Below are positions 1-36,109 of a stretch of 64,000 bases of DNA, in pieces. Both the position numbers and the translations under genes were made by a program. Below the pieces are notes generated by a model, which saw nothing but the letters and a program-made list of their open reading frames with translations, was not told the DNA's origin and did not search any database. How positions within the stretch are numbered: position 1 is the stretch's first letter; each line of letters begins with the position of its first letter. Location of the stretch: the IMG/VR virus record IMGVR_UViG_3300020477_000990, positions 1 through 64,000 of that record; one strand, written 5' to 3'.

Positions 1-76
1 GGGGGATTAGCTCAGCTGGGAGAGCGCCTGATTTGCATTCAGGAGGTCAGCGGTTCGATCCCGCTATCCTCCACCA
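1..76 (+). tRNA. tRNA-Ala(TGC)
   Basis: Cloverleaf: acceptor GGGGGAT/ATCCTCC with G3:U70, anticodon arm CCTGA-TTTGCAT-TCAGG, GGTTCGATCC T-arm, encoded CCA. Confidence 0.97.
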
Positions 77-124
77 ATTTAAATATAAGTTATTCGAAAA
101 ATCAACAAGTTAAATATAATAGTA

Positions 125-1333
125 ATGAAACATATTAGAAAACAATTTCCGATATTTAATAAAAAACTACCTAGTGGAAAGACGCTAGTGTACTTTGATA
201 GTGCTAATTCTTCACAAAAACCACAAAGAGTAATTGATCGAATGAATACGTTTTTAACAGAAGAGTATTCTAGTGTTGGTAGAAGTATACATGAATTGTC
301 TAATAGTGCAACAAAGGCGGTTGAAGATAGTAGACAAGCAGTTGCTAAATTTATTAATGCTAGAGAACCAGATGAAATTGTTTTTACAAAATCAGCCACA
401 GAAGCAATTAATATGATATCAACGTCATATGGTAGAACAATGCAACCAGGTGATGAAATAATTACAACAGAAGTAGAACATCATTCAAATTATATTCCGT
501 GGCATTTACAACGTAAGTTTAATGGAGCAGTTATTAAGTTTCTTAAATTAAATAATGAGCATCAAATTAATATTGATGAGCTAGAATCATTAATTACAGA
601 CCGTACTAAAATAATTGCAATTACACATTTATCAAATACTACAGGGCAAACAATAGACGTTAAACGTGTTTGTGAAATTGCTCATGCAAAAGGTATAGTT
701 GTATCAGTTGATGGAACACAAGGTGCTCCACATATGAAAGTTAATGTACAAGATATTGATTGCGATTTTTATGTAATGAGTGGTCATAAAATGTATGCAC
801 CAAGTGGTATTGGAGTAATGTATGCTAAACGTAAATGGATTGATGAATTAGATCCAGCATTAGGTGGTGGTGGAATGATTACAAATGTTGATCATGATAC
901 TGTTGACTTTGCAGAAGGTTCTAAAAAATGGGAAGCTGGAACGTTAGCAGTAACTGAAATTGTTGGCTTACATGAAGCATTAAATTTTTATGTAGATACA
1001 GGTTTTGATGAAATGGTTAAGCATGAAGAAGAATTAATTAATTATGCTTATGAAAAAATGTCAGAAATAGATGGAATGCAGTTTATTGGAACAAAAAAAC
1101 GTAGTGCTGTTATTTCGTTTAATATTGATGGAATACATCATCAAGATATGGCTATGTTTTTAGATGCTTATGGAATAGCAACTCGTCCAGGGCACCATTG
1201 TACACAAATGCTACATAGACAAATAGGATGGACAGGATCTTGTAGAATATCTACAGGAGTGTACAATACAAAAGAGGAAGTTGATTATTTTCTAACTTGT
1301 TTAAATGAAATTAAAGGCAGGTTTGGCAAATAA
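125..1333 (+). CDS. sufS: Cysteine desulfurase, SufS class
   Basis: YFDSANSSQKP, PLP-lysine SGHKMYAPSGIG, catalytic RPGHHC. Confidence 0.93.
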   Translation: MKHIRKQFPIFNKKLPSGKTLVYFDSANSSQKPQRVIDRMNTFLTEEYSSVGRSIHELSNSATKAVEDSRQAVAKFINAREPDEIVFTKSATEAINMISTSYGRTMQPGDEIITTEVEHHSNYIPWHLQRKFNGAVIKFLKLNNEHQINIDELESLITDRTKIIAITHLSNTTGQTIDVKRVCEIAHAKGIVVSVDGTQGAPHMKVNVQDIDCDFYVMSGHKMYAPSGIGVMYAKRKWIDELDPALGGGGMITNVDHDTVDFAEGSKKWEAGTLAVTEIVGLHEALNFYVDTGFDEMVKHEEELINYAYEKMSEIDGMQFIGTKKRSAVISFNIDGIHHQDMAMFLDAYGIATRPGHHCTQMLHRQIGWTGSCRISTGVYNTKEEVDYFLTCLNEIKGRFGK

Positions 1334-1345
1334 ATATTAATATAG

Positions 1346-1420
1346 GCGGGTGTAGCTCAGTGGTAGAGCGTCTCGTTGCCAACGAGAAGGTCATGGGTTC
1401 GAACCCCATTACCCGCTCCA
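1346..1420 (+). tRNA. tRNA-Gly(GCC)
   Basis: GCGGGTG/TACCCGC acceptor, TCTCG-TTGCCAA-CGAGA anticodon arm, TTCGAA T-loop, TCCA end. Confidence 0.97.
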
Positions 1421-1422
1421 TG

Positions 1423-1430
1423 TATAAATA
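1423..1430 (+). promoter_or_regulatory. T4-type late promoter TATAAATA
   Basis: Exact TATAAATA upstream of ORF 1449. Confidence 0.55.
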
Positions 1431-1448
1431 AATAAAAAGAAAGAAAAA

Positions 1449-2105
1449 ATGAAAACAGAAAAAATAGAACAGTTTTTAAAGAAGGTAGAATCAGAAGTTT
1501 ATTCTGAACCAGATTCACCTATGCATACACAAATGATAGATATGGTTGTTAAAGATCTTTTAGAAAATCAATTAAAAGAAACAGATAAACAAATTCGTAT
1601 TTTAGATATAGGTTGTGGCCAAGGATATGCATTAATAAAATTTAAAGAAGCTGGGTTTGAAAACTTGCAAGGAATAACAATGAGCAAAGAAGATGTTGAT
1701 AAAACTATTGAAAGAGGATTTAAATGTGAAAACATGGATCAGTCTTTTATGACATTTGATGATAATAGTTTTGATTTTATGTTTTCAAGACATTGTTTAG
1801 AACATTCACCATTTCCATATTTAACATTAATAGAATATTTTAGAGTGTGCAAACCAAATGGTAGAATTTATATAGAAATGCCTGCCCCTAATAATCATCG
1901 TCCATTAGAAAGAATAGCAAATCATTATTCAATTATGGATACTAAAATGTGGGGTGCATTAATGATGAGAGTAGGTTGGCAAGTTTTAGTTGCTAACCAT
2001 TTTACTATTAAATTAACTGACAACAACAATCCTGATAAACCGTTTGACGAAAAGAATTTAGTTTTCGTTTTACAAAAACCAACCAATGAACAATCAACCA
2101 AATAA
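1449..2105 (+). CDS. Class I SAM-dependent methyltransferase
   Basis: ILDIGCGQG motif I; FDDNSFDF...HCLEH; RVCKPNG. Confidence 0.88.
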   Translation: MKTEKIEQFLKKVESEVYSEPDSPMHTQMIDMVVKDLLENQLKETDKQIRILDIGCGQGYALIKFKEAGFENLQGITMSKEDVDKTIERGFKCENMDQSFMTFDDNSFDFMFSRHCLEHSPFPYLTLIEYFRVCKPNGRIYIEMPAPNNHRPLERIANHYSIMDTKMWGALMMRVGWQVLVANHFTIKLTDNNNPDKPFDEKNLVFVLQKPTNEQSTK

Positions 2106-2120
2106 TAATTGGAGATAATA

Positions 2121-3179
2121 ATGATCAAAATAGATACAATTTCTCAAGAAGGATATGAGAAAGTAATACGTATAACTGAACCAGAAAGTGGATTAAATTG
2201 TGTTATTGCATTATGTGATTATTTAAAAACAAAACACATTGCTTTATGTAGTATTAAAGTAGAAGAATATACATCAGATAATTTGCATTTAGATAGAACA
2301 TTAAGATATGCTAATAGTGTAGCTAAAAAACTATCGTATGCAGGATTACCTTACACTGGTGGTTCAATAACAATCAATAAAAGTTCAATTAAAAGTGAAA
2401 GAGAAGCATTAAACCAATTGTCTACTTTTTTAACAACAAATTTAAAAGATGAGTTAGTAGCCTTTGTAGAATATGGTCTTGAAGAATTAGCATTAGATCA
2501 TTTATGTAAAAATTGTGATAGTGTTATACAAATTGATAGTGATTTGTATTTTAAAGCACAGGCAAAAGGTGCATACTATTCTATACGAGCTTTACAACAA
2601 TTTCAAAGTGGAAATAAAAATTTAAAATATAAACATATTGTAATAGACGGAGTCGGACCATTAGGTTCAGAGTTAGCACAATTACTTGATCGTGCAGGAG
2701 CAAATATTACTGTTTGTGATAATGACGAACAAAATATAAACGATTTATATGCTCATATGCATTTTGGTAAATGTACAGTTGAAGAAGCTCCTTCAGTTCC
2801 AGGTGATGTATATGTTTTATGTAGTAGTCCAGAAAAATTAGATAAGAAGTCTACATATGAAATTAAGTCGTCAAGAATTGTAGGTGTAACTGATGCACAA
2901 TTATCTAGTAACAAAGCAGGATATAATTTACATAGTAAAGATATTATATATGTTCCTGAGTTTGTTGCAGGAGTTGGTGGGTTAGTTGCTATTGCAAAAC
3001 AACAATCAAAAGTTAAAAAAACTTTAGACAAAGAGTTAGATACTATTTTTACTAGAACATTGTCGTTATTAAACCATAGTTCAAAAAATAGAAAGCCACC
3101 ATTTATTGTAGCTGAACAACAAATGACAGATAAATCACCAACTAAACAGGCCAAACAACCAGAAACAATAACAATATGA
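2121..3179 (+). CDS. Glu/Leu/Phe/Val dehydrogenase homologue, catalytic motifs degenerate
   Basis: GYEKV...ESGLNCVIAL N-terminus, DGVGPLG Rossmann motif, IIYVPEFVAGVGG; GGAG at 2111 supports ATG 2121. Confidence 0.75.
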   Translation: MIKIDTISQEGYEKVIRITEPESGLNCVIALCDYLKTKHIALCSIKVEEYTSDNLHLDRTLRYANSVAKKLSYAGLPYTGGSITINKSSIKSEREALNQLSTFLTTNLKDELVAFVEYGLEELALDHLCKNCDSVIQIDSDLYFKAQAKGAYYSIRALQQFQSGNKNLKYKHIVIDGVGPLGSELAQLLDRAGANITVCDNDEQNINDLYAHMHFGKCTVEEAPSVPGDVYVLCSSPEKLDKKSTYEIKSSRIVGVTDAQLSSNKAGYNLHSKDIIYVPEFVAGVGGLVAIAKQQSKVKKTLDKELDTIFTRTLSLLNHSSKNRKPPFIVAEQQMTDKSPTKQAKQPETITI

Positions 3180-3376
3180 CAGATTTAGTATTAACCAATA
3201 TTCTTTACTCATTGCGAGTATTGTTAGTTGGTGGAATATTAGTTAGAGTGTTTATGTATTTTGGCCAGAAATATAAATTAAAATATGAGCATAATTATTG
3301 GATTTCTGTATTTCTAATGAGTCAAATAACTTTTTGGATAGATTATATCCTATTTTCGCAACTTTTAACTCGATAA
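3176..3376 (+). CDS. Small membrane protein
   Basis: Two hydrophobic segments; ATGA overlap with upstream gene. Confidence 0.55.
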   Translation: MTDLVLTNILYSLRVLLVGGILVRVFMYFGQKYKLKYEHNYWISVFLMSQITFWIDYILFSQLLTR

Positions 3377-3378
3377 AG

Positions 3379-3420
3379 ATTAGTCTTTTTGGTTGACAAA
3401 AGACTAATAGATGTTATATT
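3379..3420 (+). promoter_or_regulatory. Sigma70-type promoter overlapped by an 11-bp inverted repeat
   Basis: TTGACA 3393-3398, TGnTATATT to 3420; ATTAGTCTTTT (3379-3389) / AAAAGACTAAT (3398-3408). Confidence 0.7.
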
Positions 3421-3426
3421 AATATT

Positions 3427-3873
3427 ATGACTATGCATTTAGAACGTGGCTTAACCACTCTGAATACAAAGAAGCGAAAGACTAAACCCAAGAAAATTGA
3501 GTATTATATGAAAGGGTTTAAAGAACAAAATAAGTTCTTAAAAAGTAAAGGTTTAGTACAAATGACCATGCAAGAATATATTGATTACAGACGTGGCAAG
3601 TTTAAGTCACCCGTTACTACAAATAGGAGTGTAGTGTCAACGGTTAGCACGTCGGTCTCCAAAACCGAAAGTGAGGGTTCGAATCCTTCCACTTCTGCCA
3701 AACCAGAACCTAAATTGAGTAACAAAATAGGCGGTGGTGCTACAAGAAATTGGCGTGAAGAAAAAGAAAGATTAGAAGTAAGTAGAAAATATTCAATTGT
3801 ACCTGCTTATAATAAAGGACCATATATGGTTGTATCAAAAGACGATTTAAAAACAGCAGGTAGAAAAGTATGA
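3427..3873 (+). CDS. Basic phage protein with C-terminal PAYNKGxY motif; contains tRNA-Trp internally
   Basis: Uninterrupted 148-codon ORF directly after a promoter; its stop overlaps the next ATG. Confidence 0.72.
   Translation: MTMHLERGLTTLNTKKRKTKPKKIEYYMKGFKEQNKFLKSKGLVQMTMQEYIDYRRGKFKSPVTTNRSVVSTVSTSVSKTESEGSNPSTSAKPEPKLSNKIGGGATRNWREEKERLEVSRKYSIVPAYNKGPYMVVSKDDLKTAGRKV
3625..3700 (+). tRNA. tRNA-Trp(CCA), nested in CDS 3427..3873
   Basis: AGGAGTG/CACTTCT acceptor, GTGT/GCAC D-stem, TCGGT-CTCCAAA-ACCGA, GAGGG-TTCGAAT-CCTTC, G73, encoded CCA. Confidence 0.93.
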
Positions 3874-4190
3874 TAAGAAATCCTGGAATTTTATTTTTAA
3901 TGTTATTATGGATTACTGCGATTGTATTTTTACAAGGGTGTGCATTCCTTCCAACAACGGCTACAACAACAGCAACAGCATCAGGTTCTTATCAAACATA
4001 TAAAACAATTACTATTGCAAAAACAGGAGTTGATGGAGCACTTGCACTTCAAGATAAAAAAACAACTACTGATCATATTTTAGAAATTGTAACAGGTAAA
4101 GACTGTAAAATTATGAGAGCAGTTAAAGAAGAAAGTTTAACATTTTTCTGTGTTGATACAATACCAGAACATATACAATCTAGAGACTAA
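3870..4190 (+). CDS. Putative lipoprotein
   Basis: Hydrophobic signal ending in LQGC lipobox. Confidence 0.6.
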   Translation: MIRNPGILFLMLLWITAIVFLQGCAFLPTTATTTATASGSYQTYKTITIAKTGVDGALALQDKKTTTDHILEIVTGKDCKIMRAVKEESLTFFCVDTIPEHIQSRD

Positions 4191-4192
4191 TA

Positions 4193-4381
4193 ATGTACGA
4201 AATTTGGTATATACCTAGAATACAAGATGAATTAGTTGTAGCACGATTTGAAAATGAAGAAGATGCACAATCGGCAATGACAGATTTAAAAGATAAAAGA
4301 CCAAAAGCATTTCCACATCATTATATTTGGAATACAGAAACTAAAACTAAAATCAACTACAAAGGAGAAATAAATGCCTAA
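4193..4381 (+). CDS. Hypothetical protein
   Basis: Tightly packed in operon. Confidence 0.6.
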   Translation: MYEIWYIPRIQDELVVARFENEEDAQSAMTDLKDKRPKAFPHHYIWNTETKTKINYKGEINA

Positions 4382-4706
4382 AACAGATGATCCGTTAGGA
4401 CTATATAAAACTAATCAATATTCTTGGTCAGAAGAACTTGATAGAGAAACTACACTTGGACTTGATTTTCAGTGGTGGTGGAATATGCGTAAGTACAAGA
4501 AAAAAGATATTCCAGCAAAACAATTTAGTGATGTAAAAATTAAACAACGTAATGCAGGTAATTATGGATGGCCTGGACCTGAAAAAACTGTAAAGTATTG
4601 GGTTGAACTTATTAATGGTTATGCAGTAGGTATGCATGAACCAAAACGTGGCAAAGCGGAATTTCCGATGTATGAAATGCCTAAAAAGAAAGAAGAGGTT
4701 GCATAA
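4374..4706 (+). CDS. Hypothetical protein
   Basis: AGGAG RBS; overlaps upstream ORF. Confidence 0.65.
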   Translation: MPKTDDPLGLYKTNQYSWSEELDRETTLGLDFQWWWNMRKYKKKDIPAKQFSDVKIKQRNAGNYGWPGPEKTVKYWVELINGYAVGMHEPKRGKAEFPMYEMPKKKEEVA

Positions 4707-4774
4707 TGGAACCAGCAAGTATAGTATTAGCAATATTTTTAGCCCTGTGGATAGCAGGAACTATTGATGGTTAA
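4706..4774 (+). CDS. 22-aa single-TM peptide (MEPASIVLAIFLALWIAGTIDG), not in ORF track
   Basis: TAATG coupling, GAGGT upstream, fills the gap. Confidence 0.4.
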   Translation: MEPASIVLAIFLALWIAGTIDG

Positions 4775-5108
4775 AAAATTAGATATGAAAGCAGTAAAGA
4801 AAGAACTGGATGAAATGTTTGATAATTATAAACCAAATCAAAAAATAAAAAAAGAACCAGAAGTTATAGATTTGGTTGAACAAGTAGCAAGGGCAAATCA
4901 AAAAGAACGTGATGCATTTACTAGAGGATTAGTTGCAAAATGGCCTTTGTTAGCAAAACAAATTATGGATAGCATACAAGTTGAAATTTTTGAAGCACGA
5001 ATTAAAGAAGAGCAAGAAACTTTAGAACGTATTTCAGAAGAAGCACGTAAAGAGGATGAACCTCTAATATTAACAAAAGAAATGGAAGTAGGTAAAAATG
5101 GAAATTAA
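4767..5108 (+). CDS. Hypothetical protein
   Basis: ORF coupled to pepA. Confidence 0.6.
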   Translation: MVKKLDMKAVKKELDEMFDNYKPNQKIKKEPEVIDLVEQVARANQKERDAFTRGLVAKWPLLAKQIMDSIQVEIFEARIKEEQETLERISEEARKEDEPLILTKEMEVGKNGN

Positions 5109-6597
5109 ATTTATCGACGATATGGCAGGTAGTGGTGAAAGCAATTGCGAAGTACACTTCTTGTATAAAATTAAAGATGATATACAACTATCACAACCAT
5201 CAGCAATATTAGATGAAGGCACAGATGGATTATTAAGTGAAACATTAAACAATAATAAATTTAAAGGAAAGTTTTTAGATAGTTTCTTTATAACATCAAA
5301 TAATTTGCCTTGCCATGATGCATTGTTTATATGTGTTGGTGATCCTAATGAATTAACAGAAAGCAAAAATGAAAAAATTGGTGGAGCAATTTATAGTAAA
5401 TTGCAAGAACGTGGCACACAAGGAAAAGTATTAATTTTTATTGATGATAAAATGAAAGGTCATCCTGCAACAAATATTGGGTTTGGTATGCAGTTAAAAG
5501 AATATAAGTTTGACAAATATTTTACTAAAAAAGATAAAGAAAAAACAGACTTTGAAGTAGTTGTTTGTCGCGACGGTGTTGCATCTACAACATTAGAAAA
5601 AGAATTTATAGATAAACAAGCAATGGCTGATAGTATTGCCTTTACTAAAGATTTAATTTCTGAACCATCAAATGTATTGTATCCTAAATCATATGCTGAT
5701 AGAGTTAACGATTTAGAAAAATTTGGAATAAAAGTTACAGTATATGGTGAAAAAGAATTAAAAAAAATAGGTGCAGATGCATTATTGGCAGTTGGACAAG
5801 GTAGTGAAAGAGAATCACAAATGGTAGTAATGGAATGGCAAGGTGGTAAAAAATCTGAAAAACCTGTAGCATTTGTTGGTAAAGGAGTTTGCTTTGATAC
5901 TGGTGGGTATTCAATTAAGCCATCTAAAGGTTTAAAAGACATGAAATATGATATGGGTGGATCAGCAGTAGTTGTTGGTACTATGATGAGTATTGCAAAA
6001 CGTAATTTACCTATTAATGCAGTTGGAGTTATTGGATTAGTTGAAAATATGGTGTCTAGTACAGCATATAAGCCAGGTGATGTTATTAATTCTATGAGTG
6101 GGCAAACAATTGAAATTGATAATACAGATGCAGAAGGTAGAGTAGTATTAGCAGATTGTTTATGGTACACACAAGATAAGTTTAAACCAAAAACAATGAT
6201 TAATTTAGCAACATTAACAGGAGCAATATCAATTGCACTTGGTGATCAACTTGCTGGTATATTTTCAAATAATGATGAATTAAGTAATCAATTAATTGAT
6301 GCTGGGCATCAAGTAGATGAAAAAGTTTGGCGTTTACCATGCGATCCAATAGGAGAAAGATATGACAAGTATGTTGATTCAACTATTGCAGATATGCATA
6401 ATGTAGGTAAAGGTGGTGAAGCAAGTTCAACAACAGCGGCACAATTTTTGCAAAGGTTTGTTAATGATACTCCATGGACACATATTGATATAGCTGGAGT
6501 TACTTGGAATGATAAAGGATCTATGACAGCATCTGGTGGTGCAACTGGTTGGGGAGTTAAGCTCTTAAACAAATGGGTAGATAACCTTGATGGTTAA
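5098..6597 (+). CDS. pepA: Leucyl aminopeptidase (M17)
   Basis: VGKGVCFDTGG, MKYDMGG, NTDAEGR, ATLTGA, HIDIAG. Confidence 0.95.
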   Translation: MEIKFIDDMAGSGESNCEVHFLYKIKDDIQLSQPSAILDEGTDGLLSETLNNNKFKGKFLDSFFITSNNLPCHDALFICVGDPNELTESKNEKIGGAIYSKLQERGTQGKVLIFIDDKMKGHPATNIGFGMQLKEYKFDKYFTKKDKEKTDFEVVVCRDGVASTTLEKEFIDKQAMADSIAFTKDLISEPSNVLYPKSYADRVNDLEKFGIKVTVYGEKELKKIGADALLAVGQGSERESQMVVMEWQGGKKSEKPVAFVGKGVCFDTGGYSIKPSKGLKDMKYDMGGSAVVVGTMMSIAKRNLPINAVGVIGLVENMVSSTAYKPGDVINSMSGQTIEIDNTDAEGRVVLADCLWYTQDKFKPKTMINLATLTGAISIALGDQLAGIFSNNDELSNQLIDAGHQVDEKVWRLPCDPIGERYDKYVDSTIADMHNVGKGGEASSTTAAQFLQRFVNDTPWTHIDIAGVTWNDKGSMTASGGATGWGVKLLNKWVDNLDG

Positions 6598-6856
6598 GCA
6601 AGAAACAATATCACGTCAAGAGCTTAATGAATTAAAAGAATTAATTCAAGAAGAAGCATTAATAACTAGAAGGACAATAGTGAAAACATCACAAAAAACA
6701 GACCCACAAAGTTTAAGGCGTAAAGTTTCTGAAGTAGAACGAAAACAAAAACAGGAACAATATATGCGTAAAAAATATCCAGCAGTTAATGAAGCATATA
6801 AAAATTATCAAGAAGCATTTAAGTATTATAAAATGATAATGAGAACTGTAAAATAG
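6587..6856 (+). CDS. Hypothetical helical protein, paralogue of next ORF
   Basis: Shares SLRRK...EQYMRxxYPxVNEAYKxYQ with 6860..7093. Confidence 0.65.
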   Translation: MMVKQETISRQELNELKELIQEEALITRRTIVKTSQKTDPQSLRRKVSEVERKQKQEQYMRKKYPAVNEAYKNYQEAFKYYKMIMRTVK

Positions 6857-6859
6857 AGT

Positions 6860-7093
6860 ATGGACAAAGAAAAAGATTTAGCACATGAGTTTGAAAATAT
6901 GAGACAAGAATTAATGAAGCACCACGATACAGAATACGGAAATGAAATAGAAGTTCATTCTTTAAGACGTAAGCTCTTAAAACAAGAGCAAAAAATGAAG
7001 CATGAGCAATATATGAGAAGACGTTATCCGTCAGTAAATGAAGCATATAAGCAGTATCAAATGCTCCTAAAATTAACAAAATCGCATAAGTAA
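6860..7093 (+). CDS. Hypothetical helical protein, paralogue of previous ORF
   Basis: Same shared motif. Confidence 0.65.
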   Translation: MDKEKDLAHEFENMRQELMKHHDTEYGNEIEVHSLRRKLLKQEQKMKHEQYMRRRYPSVNEAYKQYQMLLKLTKSHK

Positions 7094-7107
7094 ATTGATA
7101 AATAAAT

Positions 7108-7133
7108 ACTGAAGAGCAGACTTCAGTTTATTT
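7108..7133 (+). terminator. Hairpin in hfq leader, possible terminator
   Basis: ACTGAAG/CTTCAGT stem followed by TTATTT. Confidence 0.35.
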
Positions 7134-7143
7134 AGGTATAACT

Positions 7144-7350
7144 ATGAACGAAAATGAAACAAATTTTATAAAAAAATTAATAGACAAAAATGCACAGGTG
7201 ACAATTTTTCTAATTAATGGTGTTAAACTAACTGGAGAAATTACCGCTGTGGATCAAAATACATTAAATTTGAAACGTGAAAAACATACTCAATTGGTAT
7301 ATAAAAACGCGATTTCAACTATAATGCCCCTAGAACCCCTAGAAATTTAA
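7144..7350 (+). CDS. hfq: RNA chaperone Hfq, divergent
   Basis: Sm1 VTIFLINGVKLTG and Sm2 QLVYKNAISTIMP. Confidence 0.9.
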   Translation: MNENETNFIKKLIDKNAQVTIFLINGVKLTGEITAVDQNTLNLKREKHTQLVYKNAISTIMPLEPLEI

Positions 7351-7351
7351 T

Positions 7352-7359
7352 TATAAATA
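7352..7359 (+). promoter_or_regulatory. T4-type late promoter TATAAATA
   Basis: Exact match directly before the non-coding structured region. Confidence 0.6.
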
Positions 7360-7363
7360 CTAT

Positions 7364-7575
7364 TGATATAGATGAGTAAGGAAACTTATGAAGGGACTGG
7401 AAAGGTTTTCCTATTTTAGAGCCCGACTATATAAGGTGTGTCATATCTCGCCTATTGACTGAACATATGGCCGGGTGAATATACCGTTGGGTAACACCAG
7501 AGAATTATTCTAACGGAACCCTGTAGAAGAAGGATATATTTTAGGCCAAAGTATAGCTGGGCATTGCAGGGTTTA
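7364..7575 (+). ncRNA. Putative structured ncRNA (~210 nt), family unrecognised
   Basis: No ORF, GC-richer than flanks, several nested stems (7376-7389 GAAA hairpin, 7421-7476, 7484-7516, 7517-7573). Confidence 0.6.
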
Positions 7576-7585
7576 GTGATTTTAA

Positions 7586-7614
7586 TTGACTTTTTATGAA
7601 AAAAATATTAAAAT
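7586..7614 (+). promoter_or_regulatory. Sigma70-type promoter
   Basis: TTGACT-N17-TAAAAT. Confidence 0.5.
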
Positions 7615-7636
7615 AAAACATAATAAGGAGAAATAT

Positions 7637-7819
7637 ATGAGTACAACAAATCAACAACTTTTAACTTTATTTGATGAATACAAAGAAAACAATGATAAGT
7701 TTGCAGAAAAAGGTAATAAAGCCGCAGGTACTAGAGCTAGAAAAGCCTTATCTGAAATGACAAAGTTAGCTAAAGTGAGAAGAAAAGAAATCCAAGAAGC
7801 AAAAACTGTAACGGCATAA
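7637..7819 (+). CDS. Small basic histone H1/Hc1-like nucleoid protein
   Basis: GNKAAGTRARKAL...RKEIQ; AAGGAG RBS before ATG 7637. Confidence 0.7.
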   Translation: MSTTNQQLLTLFDEYKENNDKFAEKGNKAAGTRARKALSEMTKLAKVRRKEIQEAKTVTA

Positions 7820-7823
7820 TTAA

Positions 7824-8366
7824 ATGGAAACTTCGAACGACAAGTACGAAATTATAAGAACGGTGTGGCGTTCTGGTCGCAAGAATGATTTTGGAGATGA
7901 ATTGGTTGTTACACAAGGTAATGTTAATTTAAAGTTAGCATATATTATGGCATGGGAAGTAAATGAAAATAGACCCGAGTGTGTTTGCTGGAATGGCACC
8001 GTAGCATACTTTCCACGTATGTTTTGGTTAGACAGCATTCCAAAAAATTTTATTAAAGTTTATAACCACTCTGAAGAGAAACATTACTTAATTGAAAAGG
8101 ATAAACATTATACTATAAATGAAGATGGCATTTATGTGAAGTATAATAAAGAAGAAGGTACAGATGTGTATCAACCACAATTTATAAATGTAACTAAAAA
8201 CCCATCAGCATTAACACAGGCAATAGAATATGTGCTTTGGTTTAATGAAAATCAACGTCAACTTGACACTTATAATAGGTTATTAAGTACGTCAAAACAA
8301 GCAAGAAAACGTAGAAGAAATAGAGCTTCTAAAACGGTTGAAAAACAGATAAATACTACATTATGA
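7824..8366 (+). CDS. Hypothetical protein
   Basis: 180-aa ORF in operon. Confidence 0.65.
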   Translation: METSNDKYEIIRTVWRSGRKNDFGDELVVTQGNVNLKLAYIMAWEVNENRPECVCWNGTVAYFPRMFWLDSIPKNFIKVYNHSEEKHYLIEKDKHYTINEDGIYVKYNKEEGTDVYQPQFINVTKNPSALTQAIEYVLWFNENQRQLDTYNRLLSTSKQARKRRRNRASKTVEKQINTTL

Positions 8367-32363: not shown

Positions 32364-33392
32364 ATGAAAAACAATGTAGCTATCATCGGTAATGGTAAAA
32401 TTGGCAGAGTCATCGCCAGTTTATTAAAATCAGAGTATTTCAATGTAACTATAGCAGATCAAGAACCACAAGGCGGAGCAGTATTGCTTGATGCCACAGA
32501 TCAAAAAGCACTTGAACATTTTATACAAGGTAAAGATGTTGTAGTATCAGCGGCACCATATTTTTTAAATAAAAAAATAGCCTTAGTTGCTTCTGAAATG
32601 GGAGTAGCATATTTTGATTTAACAGAAGATATTGATGTAACAAGTTATATTCAAAGTTTAAACACAAAAACATTCATGATGCCACAATGTGGGTTGGCGC
32701 CTGGAGCAGTTAATATTATAGGTTCTAATCTAATAAAAGAATTTGATGAAGTGCATGATGTTCAAATGAGAGTAGGAGCATTACCGCGATATCCATCAAA
32801 CGAAATGAGTTATTATTTAACTTGGTCTACAAATGGTTTAATAAATGAGTATTGTAATTTGTGTGATGCTATAGTAGATGGCCAAAAATTAGAAATTCCA
32901 CCATTAACAGGTGTAGAAAGAATTTATATTGATGGTAGAAAATACGAAGCATTTAATACTTCAGGTGGAGTAGCAACAATGTGTGAAACATTTGATGGCA
33001 AAGTACAAAATTTAAGTTATAAAACTATTAGGTATCCTGGACATAGAGACAGGATGAATTTTTTATTACAAGATTTAGGATTAAAAAGAAATAGAGATAA
33101 AATTGCAGACCTTTTTGATCAACAAGTTCCATATACAACAGAAGATGTCATCGTTATGCTAGTTAAAGTAATTGGAGTAGCTAACGGAAAACTAATCGAA
33201 CGTTCATATCAAAAAAGTATTTTTGGACAAGATGGAATGAGTGCAATTCAGAGGTCGACAGCGTCAGGAGTTTGTGCTATAGTGTTAGCTTATTGTAGAG
33301 ATGAAATAACAGGTGAAGGTTTCATTAAACAAGAAGACATTAATTGGGATACATTTATTAACAACAAATTCGGACAAGTATATAGCAAATGA
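32364..33392 (+). CDS. Saccharopine/lysine-6-dehydrogenase family protein
   Basis: IIGNGKIG, YFDLTED, CGLAPG, YKTIRYPGH. Confidence 0.87.
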   Translation: MKNNVAIIGNGKIGRVIASLLKSEYFNVTIADQEPQGGAVLLDATDQKALEHFIQGKDVVVSAAPYFLNKKIALVASEMGVAYFDLTEDIDVTSYIQSLNTKTFMMPQCGLAPGAVNIIGSNLIKEFDEVHDVQMRVGALPRYPSNEMSYYLTWSTNGLINEYCNLCDAIVDGQKLEIPPLTGVERIYIDGRKYEAFNTSGGVATMCETFDGKVQNLSYKTIRYPGHRDRMNFLLQDLGLKRNRDKIADLFDQQVPYTTEDVIVMLVKVIGVANGKLIERSYQKSIFGQDGMSAIQRSTASGVCAIVLAYCRDEITGEGFIKQEDINWDTFINNKFGQVYSK

Positions 33393-36109
33393 GTTATGTA
33401 GACGCTTACCTAAATAGAGACAAAGATACTATTAATATTGTTGAAAGAATAGATGGCAAAAGGGTATATAAAAGTTATCCTACTTGCTATAGATTTTATC
33501 ATGACGACAAAGATGGAACATATACATCAATATATGGTAGGTCATTAAGTAAATTTGAAACAGCAAATAGTAGAACATTTCAAAAAGAAAAGAAATTATT
33601 TGATGGGCAAAGGTTATATGAATCAGACCTAAATCCTGTGTTTAGATGTTTAGAAGAAAATTATCTTGATAAAGAAGCACCGGATCTTCATATAGCATTA
33701 TTTGATATTGAGGTTGACTTTGATAAAGATCGTGGATTTGCTAAACCAGATGATCCACATCAACGTATTACAGCAGTTACACTACATTTAAGTTGGTTAG
33801 ATAGTTTAATTACATTATGTCTTGCTCCAAAAGATATGCCTTTTGAAATGGCAGACCAAATTGCTAAAAAGTTTGAGAATACTGTATTGTGTGAAACTGA
33901 ATCACAATTACTAAACACTTTTTTACATTTAATTGAAGATGCTGATATATTGAGTGGTTGGAATAGTGAGGGTTTTGATATTCCATATCTTGTAAACAGA
34001 ACTGAAATGATATTAAGTAAAGATGATGTTAGACGTTTTAGTTTATGGGATTTGTATCCACGTGAAAGAATGTTTACAAAGTTTGGTGTAGAACAGCAAA
34101 CATATGATTTCTTTGGCAGAGTTCATTTAGATTATTTAGAATTATATAGAAAATATACATATCATGAAATGCATAGTTATAGATTAGATGCAATTGGTGA
34201 ATATGAAATTAGTGAAAAGAAAATACCATATGAAGGAACATTAGATCAGTTATATAATGAAGATTTTGAAAAGTTTATTGCATATAACAGACAAGACGTT
34301 GCACTATTGGCAAAACTTAATAAAAAATTAAAGTTCATTGACTTGTCAAATGTACTAGCACACGCAAATACTGTTTTATTGCAGACTACAATGGGTGCAG
34401 TTGCAGTTACAGAACAAGCAATTGTAAATGAAGCACATAAAAGAAATTTAATTATTCCTGATAGAAAATATCGTAAGCCACATTCAACAGATGCGGCAGT
34501 TGGTGCCTATGTAGCAAAACCTAAGAAAGGATTGCATGATTGGATAGGAGCAATTGATATTAATTCACTATATCCAAGTGTTATTAGAAGTTTAAATATG
34601 GGTCCAGAAACTATTATTGGGCAGTTACGACCAACACATACAGAAAAATACATTAATGATAAAATTTATAATGAAAAGAAATCACCAGCAGATGCTTGGG
34701 AAGGATTATTTGGTACATTAGAATATACCGCAGTTACAGAACAAGATAGAGGTACAAATATTATTGTTGATTTTGAAGATGGTACTACCGAAGAAATGAG
34801 TGGTGCTGAATTGTATGCAGTAATATTTCAACAAAATACAGATTGGTGTTTGTCAGCAAATGGTACAATTTTTAATACACAAGAAAAAGCAATTATTCCT
34901 GGATTATTAGAACATTGGTTTGCAGAAAGAAAAGTGTTACAAGGCAAAATGAAAGAAGCAATTGAAAAAGGTGATTCAGATGAAATAGCATTTTGGGATA
35001 AGCGTCAATTAGTTAAAAAGATTAATTTAAATTCATTATATGGTGCAATATTAAATCCAGGTTGTAGGTTTTTTGATCATCGTATTGGGCAATCAGTTAC
35101 ATTAACTGGTAGAACAATTACAAAACACATGGCTTCAATTACAAATGAAATTATAGCAGGTGAATATGATCATAGAGGTAAAGCAATTGTATATGGTGAT
35201 ACAGATTCAGTTTACTTTAGTGCGTACTCAATGGTTAAAGAAGATGTTAAAAGTGGTAGGTTACCATGGGATAAAGAAGCAGTAATAGAATTATATGATA
35301 ATGTAGCAAATGAAGTTAATAAATCATTTCCAGCATTTATGAAAAAAGCAACAAATGTTCCAATTAAAAATGGTGAAATAATTGTTGGTGGTAGAGAAAT
35401 GGTTGCATCAAAAGGATTGTTTATTACAAAGAAAAGATATGCAGTTCTTATATATGATTTAGAAGGACATAGACAAGATGTTGATAATCCAGGTAAACTT
35501 AAAGCAATGGGTCTTGATTTAAAAAGATCTGATACACCTGAGTTTGTACAAAACTTTTTGTCAAAAATTTTAATTGAAATTTTAACAGGCAAAGATAAAA
35601 AAGAAATATTATCCGGCATACAAGAATTTAAAAGAAAGTTTGGTGAAAGACCTGGTTGGGAAAAAGGTACACCAAAACGTGTAAACAATTTAACAAAGTA
35701 TGTTGATGAACTTGAACGTTATAGTAAGCATACAGCGAGAGTAGGATATATTAATGGCAATGGCAATGGTAAACTTAAAAAACCAGCATTACCTGGTCAT
35801 GTAAGAGCAAGTATTAATTGGAATAAAATGCGTGAAGCATATAGAGATTTGTATTCGTTGCCAATTATGGACGGACAAAAAGTTATTGTATGTAAATTAA
35901 AATCAAATCCAATGAATTATACATCAATTGCATATCCAATTGATGAATTAAATATTCCAAAATGGTTTAAAGAATTACCTTTTGATCATGAAGCAATGGA
36001 ACAAGCAATAATTGATCAAAAAGTTAGTAATTTAATGAGTGGGTTAGGATGGGATTTAGAGTCAACTAAAAAGTCAGCAGTATTTGATTCTTTATTTGAA
36101 ATGGTATAA
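33389..36109 (+). CDS. Family B DNA polymerase
   Basis: Exo DIE, GWNSEGFD; Pol DINSLYPS, KINLNSLYG, YGDTDS, KKRY. Confidence 0.96.
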   Translation: MSYVDAYLNRDKDTINIVERIDGKRVYKSYPTCYRFYHDDKDGTYTSIYGRSLSKFETANSRTFQKEKKLFDGQRLYESDLNPVFRCLEENYLDKEAPDLHIALFDIEVDFDKDRGFAKPDDPHQRITAVTLHLSWLDSLITLCLAPKDMPFEMADQIAKKFENTVLCETESQLLNTFLHLIEDADILSGWNSEGFDIPYLVNRTEMILSKDDVRRFSLWDLYPRERMFTKFGVEQQTYDFFGRVHLDYLELYRKYTYHEMHSYRLDAIGEYEISEKKIPYEGTLDQLYNEDFEKFIAYNRQDVALLAKLNKKLKFIDLSNVLAHANTVLLQTTMGAVAVTEQAIVNEAHKRNLIIPDRKYRKPHSTDAAVGAYVAKPKKGLHDWIGAIDINSLYPSVIRSLNMGPETIIGQLRPTHTEKYINDKIYNEKKSPADAWEGLFGTLEYTAVTEQDRGTNIIVDFEDGTTEEMSGAELYAVIFQQNTDWCLSANGTIFNTQEKAIIPGLLEHWFAERKVLQGKMKEAIEKGDSDEIAFWDKRQLVKKINLNSLYGAILNPGCRFFDHRIGQSVTLTGRTITKHMASITNEIIAGEYDHRGKAIVYGDTDSVYFSAYSMVKEDVKSGRLPWDKEAVIELYDNVANEVNKSFPAFMKKATNVPIKNGEIIVGGREMVASKGLFITKKRYAVLIYDLEGHRQDVDNPGKLKAMGLDLKRSDTPEFVQNFLSKILIEILTGKDKKEILSGIQEFKRKFGERPGWEKGTPKRVNNLTKYVDELERYSKHTARVGYINGNGNGKLKKPALPGHVRASINWNKMREAYRDLYSLPIMDGQKVIVCKLKSNPMNYTSIAYPIDELNIPKWFKELPFDHEAMEQAIIDQKVSNLMSGLGWDLESTKKSAVFDSLFEMV

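Follow-up and report, generated by a model that had tools for sequence, protein, structure and literature searches.

Transcripts that carry both tRNA and coding sequence are familiar in bacteria and their phages. In the thrU-tyrU-glyT-thrT-tufB operon of E. coli, and in the tRNA cluster of phage T4 with its interspersed small ORFs (the T4 tRNA region is also described in PMC2330249), one transcript holds both, and host RNase P and other nucleases separate them. In those cases the tRNAs lie outside the coding sequences, so both products can come from one RNA without conflict. Overlapping and embedded phage genes are equally familiar: in Rz1 inside Rz (PMC9144972), as in the overlaps of phiX174, one stretch of phage DNA codes for two products and the constraints of both are visible, although there the second product is another protein read in another frame. 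In tmRNA (ssrA) a single RNA combines a tRNA part and a translated part, but the short ORF lies outside the tRNA-like domain and the molecule acts in trans. A further close case is a putative tRNA-Pro-like gene nested in the mitochondrial mutS gene of octocorals (PMC11353228), where a tRNA-shaped sequence sits on the same strand inside a protein-coding region, is conserved among relatives, and was discussed as dual coding; it is in an organelle, and was described as putative and tRNA-like. Finally, marine phages carry free-standing tRNA-Trp genes within tRNA clusters, which are intergenic and have no conserved protein domains on either side.

Here we describe a tRNA-Trp gene that lies in frame, on the same strand, inside the predicted-disordered linker of a small conserved phage protein gene. 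The window, meaning the whole stretch of DNA that was analysed, is 64,000 nucleotides long and forms the first 64 kb of the 328-kb IMG/VR viral contig IMGVR_UViG_3300020477_000990. Compared with the co-transcripts above, the tRNA here is part of the reading frame; compared with the embedded phage genes, the second product is a structural RNA on the same strand; and compared with the octocoral case, this one adds covariation, selection on both flanks, several configurations, and homologues without a tRNA. Our full-text literature searches found no description of this arrangement in phages. The features of the locus are as follows.

3379..3408, + strand: a perfect 11-nt inverted repeat (3379-3389 / 3398-3408, 8-nt loop) overlapping the -35 hexamer, which could be a hairpin ending the upstream gene or an operator.
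3393..3420, + strand: a sigma-70-like promoter, with TTGACA at 3393-3398, a 16-nt spacer, and a TG-extended TATATT ending at 3420.
3427..3873, + strand: a 148-codon ORF of an uncharacterised two-domain marine-myophage protein family.
3427..3624, + strand: the N-terminal half of the ORF, a basic stretch followed by two helices (..NKFLK.., ..EYIDY.G..).
3625..3700, + strand: tRNA-Trp(CCA), 76 nt with an encoded CCA, also codons 67-92 of the ORF, within the predicted-disordered linker.
3701..3873, + strand: the C-terminal half of the ORF, the rest of the linker, an invariant W109, and a helix and beta-hairpin carrying the PAYNKGPYMVV motif, with no conserved start codon of its own.
3870..4190, + strand: the next gene, whose start overlaps the stop of the ORF as ATGA; from the sequence only, its N-terminus, a hydrophobic stretch ending in LQGC, looks like a lipoprotein signal peptide.

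ARAGORN calls three tRNA genes in the window, Ala at 1-76, Gly at 1346-1420, and Trp (anticodon CCA) at 3625-3700, and neither ARAGORN nor Rfam found a tmRNA there. The Trp gene scores 60 bits against the Rfam tRNA model RF00005, whose threshold is 29 (E = 2e-11), and forms a cloverleaf with 7/4/5/5-bp stems, G18G19, and a T-loop TTCGAAT. The CCA anticodon, G73, and an A1-U72 pair are identity elements of bacterial TrpRS, and all three are present; among relatives the 1-72 pair is A-U, G-U, or G-C. The canonical tertiary pair U8-A14 is absent, since the tRNA has C14 instead of the near-universal A14. The tRNA begins at codon position 1 and is translated without a stop as RSVVSTVSTSVSKTESEGSNPSTSAK. 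The promoter matches 11 of 12 consensus positions and its -10 ends 6 nt before the ATG, which is a leaderless-mRNA geometry; this spacing is conserved in many relatives, both tRNA-bearing and tRNA-less, while the RNA contigs described below begin only at 3531, so that the position of the transcription start is inferred from the promoter. The inverted repeat at 3379-3408 is also seen in the close relatives L165, L244, and L245 (L with a number denotes one of the loci we examined), and more distant relatives have a different hairpin just upstream.

A tblastn search found homologues of the ORF annotated as single hypothetical proteins in three cultured phages: Methylophilales phage Melnitz, and Pelagibacter phages Mosig and HTVC008M. 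Mosig and HTVC008M have both halves of the protein and no tRNA, whereas Melnitz has a tRNA-Trp in the same place. A megablast of positions 1-8000 against the phage collection gave no match. The family is large, with more than 400 IMG/VR loci and 525 database proteins matching at E <= 1e-5, and its members share a basic N-terminus and two helices, a variable linker, and a C-terminal domain with the PAYNKGPYMVV motif. AlphaFold2 models both domains with confidence (pLDDT is about 90 for residues 21-60), while pLDDT is below 50 for residues 70-104, the segment predicted to be disordered in which the tRNA-coded residues 67-92 fall. Searches for a function returned only uncharacterised proteins: Pfam gave no hit, PHROG phrog_4593 (unknown function) gave a weak hit with E = 5e-4 over residues 85-146 only (the Mosig and HTVC008M homologues also gave weak hits, and four other relatives none), and the ESM Atlas and Foldseek against viral structures added nothing further.

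Nesting is widespread in this family. Of 251 loci examined that carry the gene, 177 have the same two domains with no tRNA and 74 have a tRNA inside the linker; these give 29 distinct tRNA sequences, mostly Trp and some Pro, and the ORF is continuous with both domains in phase in every case. Five configurations exist, where phase is (tRNA start - ORF start) mod 3: tRNA-Trp of 76 nt in phase 0 (the window), tRNA-Trp of 75 nt in phase 1 (L197), tRNA-Trp of 74 nt in phase 2 (the Melnitz type), tRNA-Trp of 74 nt in phase 1 (the L130 type, in which the whole tRNA is read in another frame), and tRNA-Pro(UGG) of 77 nt in phase 0 (L159/L380:759-835, L381:1354-1430, and L387:1339-1415, the last being a divergent member with the other C-domain subtype). 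The first three read the 3′ two-thirds of the tRNA in the same frame, the difference in D-loop length being offset by a matching difference in phase at the tRNA's 5′ end. The tRNA also sits at more than one linker position, after 66 codons in the window and after 92 in L197. Sampling loci by tRNA sequence instead of by protein gave the same result, since all 8 tRNAs followed by the C-domain motif had no intervening stop and an in-frame N-domain upstream. A tree built without the tRNA-coded residues needs 9 changes of tRNA presence, 5 of them on well-supported branches.

Selection is visible on the tRNA and on both halves of the protein. Across 28 nested tRNA-Trp sequences, 98.3% of stem positions pair, against about 50% when partners are shifted, and 12 of 21 pairs show changes on both sides, with compensatory changes in the acceptor, anticodon, and T stems; the anticodon loop, G73, and CCA never vary, although some relatives have a mismatched 27-43 or 31-39 pair. 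For window-type genes dN/dS is 0.11-0.43 in the N half and 0.0-0.38 in the C half, and for Melnitz-type genes the medians are 0.09 and 0.18; both halves stay well below 1 even where synonymous sites are saturated. The C half has no conserved in-frame ATG, GTG, or TTG after the tRNA, and seven lineages have none at all between the tRNA and the motif; it can therefore only be made by reading through the tRNA. Some tRNA-less relatives keep decayed tRNA remnants inside an intact ORF, so the ORF outlives the tRNA: L149, L152, and L156 retain the anticodon stem-loop, and L077 retains the first six tRNA-coded residues. An Rfam scan of tRNA-less relatives found no sub-threshold tRNA hits, so these remnants are visible only in alignments.

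The tRNA is more than a chance resemblance, but an open frame through a tRNA is not more than chance, and it proved to be weak evidence. In free-standing tRNAs from the same contigs 13 of 36 frames are open, and what makes the nesting non-accidental is instead the homology and selection on both flanks. We had first read A8 in the Melnitz type and C14 in the window type as adaptations to the ORF, because U8-A9-G10 would be an in-frame UAG and U13-A14-A15 an in-frame UAA. Pattern scans rejected this: the same D-arms occur in free-standing tRNA-Trp genes within phage tRNA clusters, at L252, L254, and L258 for C14 and at about 100 loci for A8/U14, including some Pro, Gly, and Gln tRNAs. These free-standing genes are up to 93% identical to the nested tRNAs, and close free-standing relatives of the window tRNA are open in the same frame. 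The oddities are therefore lineage traits that made nesting possible, and not signs of decay or of adaptation to the ORF. The A8/U14 genes (the IMG/VR loci L260-L378, and also L001:3099-3172 in the Melnitz record) form a large class of marine-phage tRNA genes, with about 96 distinct tRNA-Trp genes in our sample besides the Pro, Gly, and Gln cases, and U8 with C14 forms a second class; this looks like a swapped or altered tertiary pair.

Four marine metatranscriptome runs hold contigs that cross the tRNA borders, covering 3531-3768 (94 nt upstream and 68 nt downstream of the tRNA), 3595-3758, 3617-3766, 3603-3703, and 3674-3840. The upstream genes at 2600-3530 are uncovered, while in one of the runs contigs also cover the downstream genes. 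This fits transcription from the promoter region and the existence of unprocessed, precursor-like RNA, but because these are assembled contigs they say nothing about the mature tRNA, and carried-over DNA cannot be fully excluded. The minimum-energy fold of the whole mRNA does not show the cloverleaf, which counts for little, since such folds often miss tRNAs.

We consider it probable that this is a dual-use locus, in which a bacterial-type tRNA-Trp gene lies within the part of a conserved phage gene that codes for a disordered linker. Judging from its sigma-70-type promoter, the gene is probably expressed early, and transcripts probably start at or next to the ATG. In this view, while ribosomes cover a transcript they read straight through the tRNA sequence and make the full two-domain protein, with the tRNA bases supplying 26 linker residues. 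When the region is free of ribosomes, the tRNA would fold and be cut out by host RNase P and 3′ trimming, which would yield tRNA-Trp and destroy the message, as the 5′ piece has no stop codon and the 3′ piece has no start. That 5′ piece would be a non-stop mRNA, the substrate of tmRNA. Melnitz encodes a tmRNA (PMC9004378), and in L077 a two-piece alphaproteobacterial-type tmRNA (L077:1377-1731, 96 bits), followed by tRNA-Ala and tRNA-Asp, lies just upstream of the family member that holds a decayed tRNA remnant, so a link is conceivable. Our comparisons show purifying selection on both products, a frame kept across many variants, and, within the limits of the contigs given above, RNA spanning the tRNA borders. 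The processing steps, which follow what is known of bacterial tRNA processing, the competition between translation and maturation, the making and aminoacylation of a mature tRNA, the making of the protein, and any function of that protein are inferred, neither product nor a mapped transcript end having been observed directly.

The sequence-only reading that prompted this work was correct in its observation: the intact tRNA, the continuous ORF around it, the start 6 nt after a -10, the C-terminal PAYNKGPY motif, and the stop overlapping the next start are all there. Its interpretation is only partly supported. Its claim that the flanks look like a real protein holds, because homologues with and without the tRNA share both halves around a variable linker, which is the comparison that it had proposed in advance; the motif is the hallmark of the family, the leaderless promoter geometry is conserved, the tRNA-coded residues do fall in a segment predicted to be disordered, and selection acts on the tRNA fold and on both protein halves. 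Nothing shows a regulated processing switch, however, and the proposal that one transcript yields either protein or tRNA is an inference and probably too strict, as a transcript could be translated several times before it is cut. The absence of a stop inside the tRNA is weak evidence on its own, for the reasons given above. What could not be known from the sequence alone is that the arrangement is widespread and appears to have changed repeatedly across the family.

It remains possible, though very unlikely, that only one of the two products matters. Open frames through tRNAs are common and tRNA clusters give long accidental open frames, so that, with protein data lacking, the long ORF might be a gene-caller artefact or a dead gene whose two halves are no longer made as one protein; against this stand the dN/dS values of both halves in tRNA-bearing lineages, the halves being in frame in all 74 loci and all five configurations, the lack of a start codon for the C half, and the single ORFs of the tRNA-less homologues. 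Conversely, the tRNA-like stretch might be a relic, or an RNA structure used for something other than decoding, such as a cleavage or stability signal, given that the tRNA has decayed in several lineages while the ORF survived, that C14 is non-canonical, and that most family members do without a tRNA. This is hard to reconcile with the compensatory changes, with the invariant anticodon loop, G73, and CCA over 28 variants, and with the near identity to free-standing phage tRNA-Trp genes in tRNA clusters; moreover, in Melnitz this is the only tRNA-Trp reported (PMC9004378). An intron-like behaviour, in which the tRNA is cut out and the two mRNA pieces are rejoined, might be entertained because T4-like phages often carry RNA repair enzymes, but we reject it as all but ruled out: the tRNAs are 74-77 nt long, which is not a multiple of three for the Trp tRNAs, the frame runs through them and not around them, and no form joining 3624 to 3701 appeared in the RNA contigs.

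A regulated switch, in which ribosome traffic on the ORF sets how much tRNA is released, for example through stalling at Trp codons when charged tRNA-Trp is scarce, in the manner of attenuation, is likewise unlikely on present evidence. The geometry allows it, because translation and tRNA folding exclude each other on one RNA, and all 44 distinct tRNA-bearing ORFs have at least one Trp codon outside the tRNA, against 76 of 129 tRNA-less ORFs. That association disappears once relatedness is taken into account, as 5 independent pairs show no trend; W109 is also invariant in tRNA-less relatives, and tRNA-Pro nests in the same place. Similarly, and with little weight placed on it, the linker may be a recurrent safe harbour where phage tRNA genes (Trp of several types, and Pro) settle and are swapped, and the overlap may not be merely tolerated but may work as a translation-sensing device. 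Ribosome traffic on the message would then decide, molecule by molecule, between making protein and releasing tRNA, tying tRNA supply to the state of the host's translation during infection.

Annotation pipelines and curators routinely treat a CDS that overlaps a tRNA as an error, but here the comparative evidence says that both are real, so such overlaps should not be removed automatically. The overlap is also of an unusual kind, in that a protein linker's sequence is dictated by a tRNA fold, and it shows how a decaying tRNA can become ordinary coding sequence. Since one RNA must be either translated or processed, the locus would be a simple natural system for studying how ribosomes and RNase P compete. 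The phages involved infect SAR11- and OM43-like bacteria, among the most abundant marine bacteria, and because Melnitz is a cultured phage with the same layout, experiments are possible. The paper describing Melnitz lists its tRNA-Trp as matching no host or phage tRNA and, in the parts of it that we consulted, does not mention the overlap (PMC9004378). In the Melnitz record (MZ577097.1 68376-68819, equal to L001:2905-3348) the locus tags jump from _124 to _126 around the CDS that contains the tRNA, so the tRNA is probably tag _125, annotated on top of the CDS without comment.

All long ORFs of the window are on one strand, and they include a 1845-aa tail-fibre-like protein. Among the tRNAs, at 1-6597, lies a cluster of metabolic-type genes, which includes an IscS-like class-V aminotransferase (125-1333) between tRNA-Ala and tRNA-Gly, a SAM methyltransferase (1449-2105), a Rossmann/ELFV-dehydrogenase-like protein (2109-3179), and an M17 leucyl aminopeptidase (5098-6597); relative L244 adds ribosomal protein L33, Hfq, and Hc1 genes. 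The window also encodes a family-B DNA polymerase (33389-36109) that is closest to those of jumbo phages (Sinorhizobium phage Phosso 51%, Agrobacterium phage Atu_ph07 46%) and not to those of the pelagimyophages, yet the nested-tRNA gene family is shared with Kyanoviridae phages such as Melnitz and HTVC008M.
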